The position numbers were made by a program, and so were the translations under genes. DNA of 7,013 nt from the NCBI RefSeq assembly GCF_006345805.1, contig NW_021828954.1:1-7013 (forward strand), given 5' to 3'. The stretch is from Octopus sinensis (Eukaryota). The notes under the pieces are model-generated. The model had not been told where the DNA came from, ran no database searches, and saw only the letters and a program-made list of their open reading frames with translations. Of the stretch, positions 759 to 2,809 are shown piece after piece. The first letter of the stretch is position 1; the number at the start of each line of letters is the position of its first letter.

Positions 759-900
759 GGCACTGTCATGCCTTTGGGTGTCAGAAGTGAAAGTAGAGAA
801 ATCTGACGTCAGACGTCAACTTCGTGTATTTACGTCGTCTTTCTTTATTACGCTTACGGGGCCGTTTATTTACGTACCACTGAAATGCAAGTAAAAGCTT

Positions 901-971
901 GTATGTATGTATGTATGTATGTATGTATGTATATATATACATACATACATACACACATATATATAATATAC

Positions 972-1005
<34 letters not shown>

Positions 1006-1035
1006 TTAATACATACATATATATAATATATACAT
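901..1035. repeat. (GTAT)n/(TA)n compound microsatellite in the left arm (mirror at ~2560-2675)
   Basis: Read directly from the sequence. Confidence 0.9.
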
Positions 1036-1043
1036 GTATTTTT

Positions 1044-1107
1044 ACCGCCTTTAGTCGCACAAATCGACCCCAGAACTTATTCTATCGGTCTTTTTTCTTA
1101 ACCACTA
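1044..1107. mobile_element. SINE body fragment inside the left Merlin arm
   Basis: ACCGCCTTTAGTCGCACAAATCGACCCCAGAACTTATTCTATCGGTCTTTT resembles an abundant octopus SINE body as I recall it, and more weakly 4790-4870 of this window. It is bounded by (TA)/(TATG)/(TAGA) microsatellites. Confidence 0.55.
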
Positions 1108-1414
1108 TACATTATATACATACATACAGATAGATAGATAGATAACACACACACATATAATATATAAAATGTGTACGTGTGTACATTTTTTCAGAAAAAA
1201 ATTCATACATTTTAAATATCAATAGCATTTCTCTTATTTTTTACATGAAGTTTTTCGAAAAATGAATTTAGAATGTAAAAATCAAATATATCAAATTAAT
1301 AAACGCAAATTAAATTTTCAAATATCATTTTTCAAACGGTGAGATTATCAAAATATAAACTTGAAGTTAAGTTTAAAAATAAATGCGATACTCATTCTGT
1401 CTTGATACTTATGC

Positions 1415-1672
1415 TCAAATACATGGATATAGCTGTCGAATTTGTTCTAATCAACTTCCCGATATATCATCCTTAAATTCATAGCGCCACATGAATTCGA
1501 TGAGATGGGTCTGAAGTAATTTTCTGGCTGTTCCCCATTCTCTTCTCCTATTTCGAGTCTTTACATGTTTCCATAAACATTCTATGTGGTTGGTTGTGGC
1601 AAATGTTGTAGCAGTGGAGACGGCAATATCGCGGTGACTAATTCCTCTTAAACTTGGATATGCAAAAGCCAT
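1415..1672 (-). pseudogene. Second, inverted Merlin transposase fragment: putative N-terminus fused in frame to the C-terminus
   Basis: The ORF track gives MAFAYPSLRGISHRDIAVSTAT + TFATTNHIECLWKHVKTRNRRREWGTARKLLQTHLIEFMWRYEFKDDI. A frameshift follows, and EQIRQLYPCI* ends at the stop at 1415-1417. That the first 22 aa are the native N-terminus is inference. Confidence 0.8.
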
Positions 1673-1839
1673 ATTAAAAATTGTTTAGCACGTGTTGATA
1701 TCACACTGAAAGTTTCTAACTGAATAAATTTCAAAGTTTGAATTACGCACGTGGTGGTCAGTGGTCATTCTGATTGGTGTATGTAATCGCGGTGATGGTC
1801 ATGGGGGTTCATTTGTGCAGATTTTGGTGTGATTTCTTT
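1673..1839 (-). promoter_or_regulatory. Putative transposase promoter/5' region
   Basis: Lies upstream of the ATG at 1672 on the minus strand. It has a CCAAT motif (ATTGG at 1773-1777) and two CACGTG E-boxes (1689-1694, 1748-1753). These are short motifs only, so function is inferred. Confidence 0.3.
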
Positions 1840-1905
1840 TTTAAAAACAATAATGAATAATGCAAGAATATATTTATTCTTGCATTATTCATTATTGTTT
1901 TTAAA
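1840..1905. repeat. Perfect 31-bp AT-rich inverted repeat with 4-nt loop
   Basis: TTTAAAAACAATAATGAATAATGCAAGAATA (1840-1870), loop TATT, then TATTCTTGCATTATTCATTATTGTTTTTAAA (1875-1905). Confidence 0.97.
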
Positions 1906-2185
1906 TTGTCGACCTTTGGCGTTCGTATAATACACTCAGTCAGCTAGGATACAGACATTTGACCGTGAATCATTCTATAAATTTTGTTGATCCGGTAACA
2001 TTTGCCACAACCAACCACATAGAATGTTTATGAAAACATGTAAAGACTCGAAATAGGAGAGAATGTGGAACAGCCAGAAATTTACTTCAGACCCATCTCA
2101 TCGAATTCATGTGGCGCTATGAATTTAAGGATGATATATTCGGGAAGTTGATAGAACAATTCGACAGCTATATCCATGTATTTGA
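1905..2185 (+). pseudogene. Merlin/IS1595-family DDE transposase, C-terminal fragment (premature stop and frameshift)
   Basis: My translation: IVDLWRSYNTLSQLGYRHLTVNHSINFVDPVTFATTNHIECL*KHVKTRNRRECGTARNLLQTHLIEFMWRYEFKDDIFGKLIEQ. After a 1-nt shift near 2159 it continues IRQLYPCI*. This matches the family pattern DxWxxYxxLxxxGYxHxTVNHSxxFVDPxTxAxTNxIExxW...LxEFMWR...YP, with the second D and the E of the DDE triad. In-frame TGA at 2031-2033 replaces the W codon. Confidence 0.9.
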
Positions 2186-2489
2186 GCATAAGTATCAAGA
2201 CAGAATGAGTATCGGCATTATTTTTAAACTTAACTTCAAGTTTATATTTTGATAATCTCACCGTTGAAAATGATTTTGAAAATAATTTGCGTTTATTAAT
2301 TTGATATATTTTTGATTTTTACATTCTAAATTCATTTTTCGAAAACTTCATGTAAAATAAGAAGAAATGCTATTGATTTTAAAATGTATGAATTTTTTTC
2401 TGAAAAATGTACACACGTACACATTTTATATCTATTATATGTTTGTGTGTGTGTATCTATCTATCTATCTGTAGTATGTATATAATGTA

Positions 2490-2552
2490 TAGTGGTTAAG
2501 AAAAAGACCGATAGAATAAGTTCTGGGGTCGATTTGTGCGACTAAAGGCGGT
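2490..2552. mobile_element. SINE body fragment inside the right Merlin arm (inverted copy of 1044-1107)
   Basis: Near-exact reverse complement of 1044-1107. Confidence 0.55.
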
Positions 2553-2700
2553 AAAAATACATGTATATATTATATATATGTATATATGTATATATACATG
2601 TATATTATATATATGTGTGTATGTATGTATATATATATATATATACATACATACATACATACATACATACATACAAGCTTTTACTTGCATTTCAGTGGTA

Positions 2701-2744
2701 CGTAAATAAACAGCGTAAATAAACGAAAGACGACGTAAATACAC
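2701..2744 (+). repeat. Three subterminal CGTAAATA(A/C)AC repeats in the Merlin end (mirrored at ~824-874)
   Basis: Copies at 2701-2711, 2714-2724 and 2734-2744. Degenerate reverse complements occur in the left arm. Confidence 0.8.
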
Positions 2745-2809
2745 GAAGTTGACGTCTGATGTCAGATTTCTCTACTTTCACTTCTGACACCCAAAGGCAT
2801 GACAGTGCC

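Follow-up and report, generated by a model that had tools for sequence, protein, structure and literature searches.

The element at positions 759 to 2809

The window analyzed here is the entire 7,013-bp unplaced contig NW_021828954.1 (C5425) of Octopus sinensis, taken from a 2.72-Gb assembly of 13,516 contigs to which all genome searches were confined. Between positions 759 and 2809 it contains an element with two inverted arms and the remnants of two transposase genes, assigned below to the Merlin superfamily. When 759-1650 was locally aligned with the reverse complement of 1950-2809, the paired arms (759-1607 and 1997-2809) shared 792 matching positions and differed by 6 mismatches and 66 gap columns; the identity is 99.2% if gaps are disregarded. 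Nearly all differences between the arms are indels of 1 to 4 nt in homopolymers and microsatellites. Because this excess of short indels over substitutions looks like the noise of unpolished long reads, the arm identity is taken to be about 99%. Codons for the transposase C terminus (..FATTNHIECLWKHVK..) and the region downstream of the gene occur in both arms; thus, arm alignment and translation bear out what a sequence-only reading of this DNA had stated about its ~0.8-kb arms.

The element begins with GGCACTGTCATGCC, finishes with the reverse complement of that motif, and is flanked by an exact 8-bp target site duplication (TSD), CAAACAAC, at 751-758 and 2810-2817. It lies within a dispersed CA-rich repeat, other copies of which (L044 and L047; L-numbers are working labels for extracted loci, and C-numbers are chromosome or contig labels of the assembly) read CTACAAACAACACACAC without interruption and contain CAAACAAC once. 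These paralogous empty sites show that the 8-mer is a true duplication rather than a chance match in CA-rich DNA, and the perfect TSD reported earlier therefore stands. The host repeat itself occupies 560-758 and 2818-3316 and returned 2,900 first-look candidates, of which the scored copies are 84 to 92% identical; positions 1-758 contain two ~359-bp tandem units of it.

The center of the element is a perfect palindrome of 31 + 31 nt (1840-1905) around the loop TATT (1871-1874). To its left, the minus strand from 1672 to 1608 encodes MAFAYPSLRGISHRDIAVSTATT, which is fused at 1607 to FATTNHIECLWKHVK; to its right, the plus strand from 1910 encodes DLWRSYNTLSQLGYRHLTVNHSINFVDPVTFATTNHIECL. A genome search with 1560-2060 matched the segment 1604-1905 at >25 loci with 95 to 100% identity, several of them on both strands with an overlap at the palindrome. 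The 389 bp at 1608-1996 were also considered as a foreign spacer, which was ruled out, as they align to the N-terminal codons, upstream region, and center of full-length copies.

Compared with those copies, the window element carries two deletions. On the left, 655 alignment columns (849-1507) present in full left arms are absent, corresponding to codons 24 to 240, and the deletion is flanked by TGTT in both parents. On the right, the full right arm is followed for 31 nt beyond the loop, after which a TTGT filler (1906-1909) precedes resumption ~794 nt farther on at CGACCTTTGG. The 40-mer spanning each junction occurs once genome-wide with up to 3 mismatches allowed; the genome-wide search for copies sharing the window junctions, which the sequence-only reading had called for, accordingly returned none. 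That reading had also placed the fold-back junctions at 1607 and 1997. Instead, 1607/1608 is a private deletion, 1997 is the point at which two differently deleted arms begin to overlap, and the true center is at 1871-1874. The left gene remnant retains E248 as its only catalytic residue, while the right remnant retains the second aspartate (D211) and the glutamate and has lost D150. In its assembled form, the right gene additionally has a frameshift of 1 nt, and the W codon of ECLW reads TGA instead of TGG. Judged from its sequence, the window copy is a singleton and a non-autonomous deletion derivative, neither of whose genes is predicted to be functional. A Pfam scan of its gene fragments alone gave no match, the fragments being too short to score, and tRNA (ARAGORN) and Rfam scans of the window gave no matches.

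An intact open reading frame (ORF) of 301 amino acids is present in a full-length relative (L039:3930-4832, minus strand), and the gene fragments of the window align to this gene. The encoded protein has PF12762 DDE_Tnp_IS1595 as its sole Pfam match (E = 1.6e-18; bit score 67.6, cutoff 27), and its homologs are "ISXO2-like transposase" proteins of octopus and other animals. The candidate catalytic triad is D150, D211, and E248, with a D-D spacing (61 aa) inside the 50 to 70 aa reported for Merlin. DDE_Tnp_IS1595 is the Merlin domain (PMC8101967); Merlin is a superfamily of DNA transposons related to bacterial IS1016/IS1595 (Feschotte 2004; survey PMC8101967) and is abundant in Octopus, with 191 sequences in O. 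bimaculoides (PMC8101967). Its members have terminal inverted repeats (TIRs) of 24 to 462 bp, TSDs of 8 to 9 bp, and GG termini (PMC8101967, citing Feschotte 2004). Here, the TSD is 8 bp in the window and in ten other copies (in L027 with 7/8 positions matching) and 9 bp in one, and all ends start with 5'-GG as part of GGCACTGTCATGCC. The TIRs of standard relatives (53 nt) fall in the Merlin range, whereas the arms of the window (~0.85 kb) and of full copies (~1.7 kb) exceed it and do not enclose a single internal gene. In the full form, the "TIR" is the entire 1.7-kb half-element including a complete transposase gene, hence two gene copies per element. This departure is architectural and is no argument against homology. 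By its predicted transposase, TSDs, and termini, the family is assigned to Merlin.

Palindromic copies, single-gene relatives, and end types

At least four whole-element palindromes of 3.37 to 3.46 kb (L031, L032, L039, and L040; Table 1) are present in Octopus sinensis. In this full form, arms of 1.7 kb, each with a whole 301-aa transposase gene reading outward from the center, meet at the 4-nt loop within the upstream region, 200 bp from each ATG; in L031, an outward-running transposase frame was found in each arm. Exactly two terminal motifs were found in each of L031, L032, and L040, and there are thus no inner ends at the center of these copies; the terminal motif was not found in L039. 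The center GCAAGAATA-TATT-TATTCTTGC (in longer form, AATAATGCAAGAAT-loop-ATTCTTGCATTATT; in generic form, AATAATGCAAGAATA-NNNN-TATTCTTGCATTATT) occurs at nine loci: the window and eight others, which are spread over six chromosomes and another unplaced contig. The loop never varies, which argues for a single origin.

Perfect and mutually different TSDs flank both full palindromes (L031, GGTTCGTTC; L032, ATACATAA; L040, CCTGACAC; 8 to 9 bp) and deletion derivatives (L036, AAATTATG; L037, GCAGGATG; L038, GAAATATC; L042, AAAGGTTC; L022, AAGAAACC; L056, GAGTACAT), indicating that the palindrome inserts as one unit. The earlier suggestion of a family of palindromic elements that moves as a unit is thereby upheld, with the center at nine loci and separate TSDs on copies including L031, L032, and L040. 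Taken together, the element at 759-2809 is very likely a deletion derivative of a whole-element-palindromic Merlin lineage that is mobile as a unit.

Two further features of the arms were noted in this lineage. Between the terminus and the gene 3' region lies an AT-rich stretch of ~470 bp, here called X; examined as possible captured host DNA, it matched copies of the palindromic lineage only, plus one 74%-identical match on C19. A 39-bp segment resembling a short interspersed nuclear element (SINE) (CCGCCTTTAGTCGCACAAATCGACCCCAGAACTTATTCT; window 1045-1083) is present in both window arms and in L031 and absent from L032 and L040, whose left arms were compared, defining subvariants inside the lineage.

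Other genome matches, at 82 to 98% identity, end 5 nt beyond the center and are conventional elements with one gene and a 53-nt TIR, such as L025 (1,579 bp; TSD AAATATTC) and L027 (1,615 bp; TSD AGCAGA[C/T]A). A 33-nt motif from the 5' junction of these standard copies gave 105 matches at ≤3 mismatches, of which ~68, at 0 to 2 mismatches, are of the standard type. The sequence-only reading would have lost ground had autonomous members normally carried TIRs as long as the window arms. The outcome is divided, as the candidate autonomous copies are palindromes with 1.7-kb arms, whereas the standard relatives have 53-bp TIRs. In a tree of 18 aligned gene regions rooted on an O. bimaculoides copy (L063), the standard type is basal and paraphyletic (1 to 13% apart), followed by the long-TIR variants L019, L021, and L024, then by L011, and finally by the palindromic copies, which form a shallow nested clade (0 to 1.9% apart). 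Thus, the palindrome appears to be derived. The L063 contig has no recognizable TIRs and serves as a root only, not as a structural outgroup. A related family, probably non-autonomous and with the standard 5'-type end region on both sides, looks to be represented by TTTATAAATAAATATATTCTTGCAGTGTG, which has 47 matches genome-wide, including 13 convergent pairs 0.46 to 3.8 kb apart (e.g., C5:50163180/50163646, C11:62581868/62582497, and C2:154552019/154553718).

In an alignment of 12 ends, all share a 53-nt core, beyond which they fall into two subterminal types. Standard copies have a 5'-type end at the gene 5' side and a 3'-type end at the gene 3' side, with an identical 53-nt core at both. 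In L021 (C7, 1213-3072), a single gene has swapped 3'/5' ends and still a TSD (CAAAATGG); in L019 (C8, 1250-3090), a single gene has 3'/3' ends with 295-bp TIRs, and no TSD was found at its ends. The upstream end of both is an inverted copy of the 3' end, including its 46-bp tandem repeats. The palindromic lineage, including the window, has 5'/5' ends, and these 5'-type termini adjoin the gene 3' region via X. The proposal that both ends of the window element are 3' ends therefore applies to the gene-proximal part of the arms and fails for the outermost ~140 bp, which are 5'-type in both. Its corollary, that two right ends suffice for mobilization, was too specific, as the core is identical at both standard ends and the subterminal region of the window is 5'-type on both sides. 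Because unlike, swapped, and like ends all occur with TSDs, the data suggest that only the 53-nt core matters for transposition. A further copy, L024 (C28:15.37 Mb), is one-armed with a 3'-type end. The AT-rich host DNA beside it is present on either side as a repeat of ~100 bp (250-370 and 1775-1900), so it is not a simple insertion.

Deletion derivatives of the palindrome follow a common pattern. In nine derivatives and in the window, the second arm is broken 3 to 33 nt beyond the loop and joined, in each case, at a different point: the 3' repeats, codons ~45, ~232, or ~257, the terminus, or host DNA. The derivative junctions show microhomologies of 2 to 4 nt, and both loop orientations occur, so either arm can survive. 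Two further copies are more complex. L042 (2380-6833; C15:13.64 Mb) spans 4,454 bp within its TSD AAAGGTTC and has a 2,073-bp internal tandem duplication, such that the gene, the center, and the same deletion junction are each present twice. L034 (4727-6632; C3:13.07 Mb) is a derivative with a short arm of just ~134 bp; its ends lack a matching TSD, pointing to later rearrangement or to recombination with another copy.

Outside the element, a perfect 16-nt inverted repeat (3308-3323, TATATATATTGTTACG; 4498-4513, CGTAACAATATATATA) starts just before the host-repeat matches stop (3316) and surrounds ~1.2 kb that may be another inserted element. SINE-like direct repeats that are 81 to 88% identical lie at 5412-5462 and 5558-5608 and also at 5518-5549 and 5643-5674. 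A long CT-rich low-complexity tract with nested ~35-nt repeats extends from 6430 to the contig end at 7013.

Table 1. Parts of the window element and full-length palindromic copies elsewhere in the assembly
Feature	Position	Strand	Evidence or remark
Left TSD copy CAAACAAC	751-758	.	Paralogous uninterrupted sites in L044, L047
Left TIR core, ~53 nt, begins GGCACTGTCATGCC	759-811	+	Alignment of 12 ends; common to every end type
Left subterminal region, 5'-type (GACGTCAACTTCGTGTATTTACG...AAAGCTTG)	812-901	+	Matches gene-5' end of standard L025, L026, L027, not 3' end
Left arm outer part: microsatellites, AT-rich X, part of 3' subterminal repeats	902-1359	-	Mirror of 2241-2673
Left 3' untranslated region (UTR) and stop codon (1415-1417)	1360-1417	-	Aligned to full-length arms
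Left gene codons ~241-301 (FATTNHIECLW...LYPCI); TGTT deletion microhomology at 1604-1607	1418-1607	-	
Left gene codons 1-~22 (MAFAYPSLRGISHRDIAVSTATT; ATG 1670-1672), joined to codon 241 via ~655-bp deletion	1608-1672	-	
Left upstream/5' UTR region up to symmetry center	1673-1870	-	99-100% identical in >20 loci
Asymmetric 4-nt loop TATT, palindrome center	1871-1874	.	Perfect stem 1840-1870/1875-1905
First 31 nt of right arm (upstream region of right gene), before right-arm deletion	1875-1905	+	
Filler TTGT, 4 nt, at right-arm deletion junction	1906-1909	+	~794 bp missing: 5' UTR, codons 1-~209
Right gene codons ~210-301; stop 2183-2185	1910-2185	+	
Right arm: 3' UTR, 3' subterminal repeats, X, microsatellites	2186-2673	+	
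Right 5'-type subterminal region and 53-nt TIR core (ends ...GGCATGACAGTGCC)	2674-2809	-	
Right TSD copy CAAACAAC	2810-2817	.	
L031, 3,463 bp (3782-7246 of locus)	C18:14.98 Mb		Inverted repeat end to end, 4 nt between innermost arms
L032, full palindrome	C4:155.06 Mb		Mirrored ATG, C-terminal, and center motifs
L040, full palindrome	C5:62.82 Mb		Mirrored ATG, C-terminal, and center motifs
L039, full palindrome	C18:28.0 Mb		Mirrored ATG, C-terminal, and center motifs; intact ORF

Proposed origin of the palindrome and alternative explanations

Read leftwards, standard copies have GCAAGAATA-TATT-TATT-TATAAAG where the palindrome has GCAAGAATA-TATT-TATT-CTTGC. The two are collinear over 8 nt (AATAAATA), which comprise the loop and, beyond it, the 4 nt that open the second arm, as predicted if a strand ending in ...AATATATTTATT folded back on AATA/TATT and was then extended. 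We infer a single origin of the palindrome: within the upstream region of a conventional single-gene element, a nascent strand or DNA end would have paired with itself through this 4-nt microhomology and been extended by synthesis that copied the remaining element and replaced the original 5' end. Mobility would have been kept, since the transposase may need just the 53-nt terminal core that all ends have in common, so that any pair of ends would do. The deletions of the window and its siblings would reflect palindrome-provoked failure of repair or replication. In one route, the newly made strand would snap back once it had crossed the center, and gap-repair synthesis would abort; in the other, the hairpin at the center would be cut and repaired by end joining. 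The center-focused breakpoints fit either route. Junctions would then form at a microhomology, here TGTT, or acquire templated filler, here TTGT. The window copy could move only with transposase supplied by an intact relative, for example the one at C18:28.0 Mb.

Several points weigh against this account. The order of events is provisional: a standard copy that folded back only once would not acquire 5'-type termini beside the gene 3' side, which call for an additional exchange of ends, if not several, or for X to have been inserted. No single parsimonious history linking end types A, C, and B could be derived, and the data require more than one end exchange. The sequence used to root the tree is about 26% divergent. 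Standard copies also carry, in their 5' end, 48 nt that repeat the 3' UTR in inverted orientation at 85% identity (L027 1441-1488 versus 2637-2684), possibly a relic of an older fold-back and collapse. This is the arrangement that an older palindrome would leave on collapsing, so the polarity could be partly cyclic rather than a single derivation. Frameshifts, which may reflect decay or assembly noise, are present in most gene copies, with one intact ORF seen, and the palindromes are all taken from assembled sequence. Finally, the deletions of the window copy may have occurred either at this site or before insertion.

The same 48-nt copy is part of the argument for the opposite polarity, in which the palindrome is ancestral and the ~1.6-kb single-gene copies are an old, successful collapsed derivative. 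Reading inward, the standard 5' end consists of the 5'-type terminus, CTTG, the 48-nt copy, ~20 nt, and 8 nt that match the loop and the adjoining 4 nt of the palindrome. Two deletions in a left arm, with CTTG as the microhomology, would be expected to leave this order, and center-proximal collapse is demonstrably frequent. We nevertheless consider this polarity unlikely. The standard copies, up to 13% diverged, are basal and paraphyletic and always share the same 5' junction, while the palindromic copies form a shallow nested clade. Moreover, a collapsed palindrome would not be expected to have one 5'-type and one 3'-type end, as standard copies do.

That the inverted duplication is an assembly artifact, created by a long read that was chimeric, palindromic, or had a missed adapter, is very improbable. 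The low sequence quality of this 7-kb unplaced contig and the predominance of indels among the arm differences would suit such an origin. However, the borders of the palindrome coincide exactly with the TIRs and an 8-bp TSD within a host repeat that is continuous in paralogs, the two arms carry different deletions, and chromosome-scale scaffolds contain elements of the same architecture in other flanking DNA.

Hardly any weight remains for the second option of the sequence-only reading, a one-off local rearrangement in which an inverted copy of the right end took the place of the left end after a normal Merlin had inserted. Both deletion junctions are private, so some rearrangement probably took place at or just before insertion. 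The identical center and loop at eight other loci and the whole palindromes with their own TSDs nevertheless imply that the palindrome predates this insertion, and 1607 and 1997 are not fold-back junctions. Equally implausible is a composite or nested arrangement of two independent Merlin copies, head-to-head or one inside the other: two inverted gene copies mobilized by their outer ends alone would look similar, but inner TIRs are lacking (two terminal motifs per full copy in L031, L032, and L040) and a seamless 4-nt loop in the upstream region forms an identical junction at all loci.

Known systems and implications

A deletion derivative of a mobile, whole-element palindrome invites comparison with several known systems. 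The nearest in structure are foldback-like elements (Drosophila FB, Galileo of the P superfamily, and Tetris), which likewise have very long inverted arms that constitute most of the element, and hairpin-capable arms of this kind are found here as well. Both are structurally highly variable, and the variability of foldback-like elements has been ascribed to abortive gap repair, slippage, and template switching (PMC4168063). The arms of FB are, in contrast, arrays of tandem repeats, and Galileo has a single transposase gene between its long TIRs, whereas here each arm is a gene and only a 4-nt loop lies between. Homology to an FB or P-superfamily transposase was not found, DDE_Tnp_IS1595 being the sole Pfam match. 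Tn10 and Tn5 also consist of two inverted transposase genes mobilized via the outermost ends. Unlike the halves of a composite transposon, each complete with its own inner end, those of the octopus element have no inner ends, carry no cargo between them, and were probably fused by fold-back rather than by two insertions, with the center a 4-nt loop in the upstream region.

Maize Mu killer (Slotkin et al. 2005) is reportedly a natural inverted duplication of part of MuDR. The likeness lies in the inverted duplication of transposase-coding sequence, which could yield hairpin RNA if transcribed through. The difference is that Mu killer is reportedly an immobile one-off locus, whereas the octopus palindrome is bounded by TIRs and inserted at many loci.

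The window and its siblings, with their 3- to 4-nt microhomologies or short filler, resemble the internal-deletion derivatives implicated in the birth of miniature inverted-repeat transposable elements (PMC3814204). They differ in that one breakpoint lies within ~35 nt of the palindrome center. This center-focused breakpoint is a signature of palindrome instability, not of random abortive repair. The literature searched, which was limited in extent, contained no account of an autonomous DNA transposon that is palindromic throughout and has a duplicated transposase, of Merlin structure in octopus, or of this octopus family.

Transposon ends are usually viewed as a defined left/right pair, and long perfect palindromes are usually unstable in animal genomes. 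In this family, one transposase system has mobilized 5'/3', 3'/5', and 5'/5' ends as well as a doubled-gene palindrome, which argues that the 53-nt core suffices, and a dozen or so independent center-proximal derivatives record the germ line processing of a mobile palindrome. For annotation, such copies will be miscalled as long-TIR elements or split into two genes; thus, cephalopod repeat libraries should list the standard, palindromic, and collapsed forms separately. We tentatively raise a broader possibility, for which the odds are clearly against us at present: that a perfect 3.4-kb palindrome with two divergent transposase genes is a heritable, transposition-competent architecture among eukaryotic cut-and-paste transposons and that, in this Merlin family, fold-back and collapse form a recurrent cycle, yielding the 48-nt relic and the 3'/3', 3'/5', and 5'/5' variants. 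If so, end identity beyond 53 nt would be irrelevant to Merlin transposition, and mobile palindromes would be potential traveling sources of hairpin RNA, and hence of self-silencing, and potential hot spots of palindrome-driven breakage in the octopus germ line.

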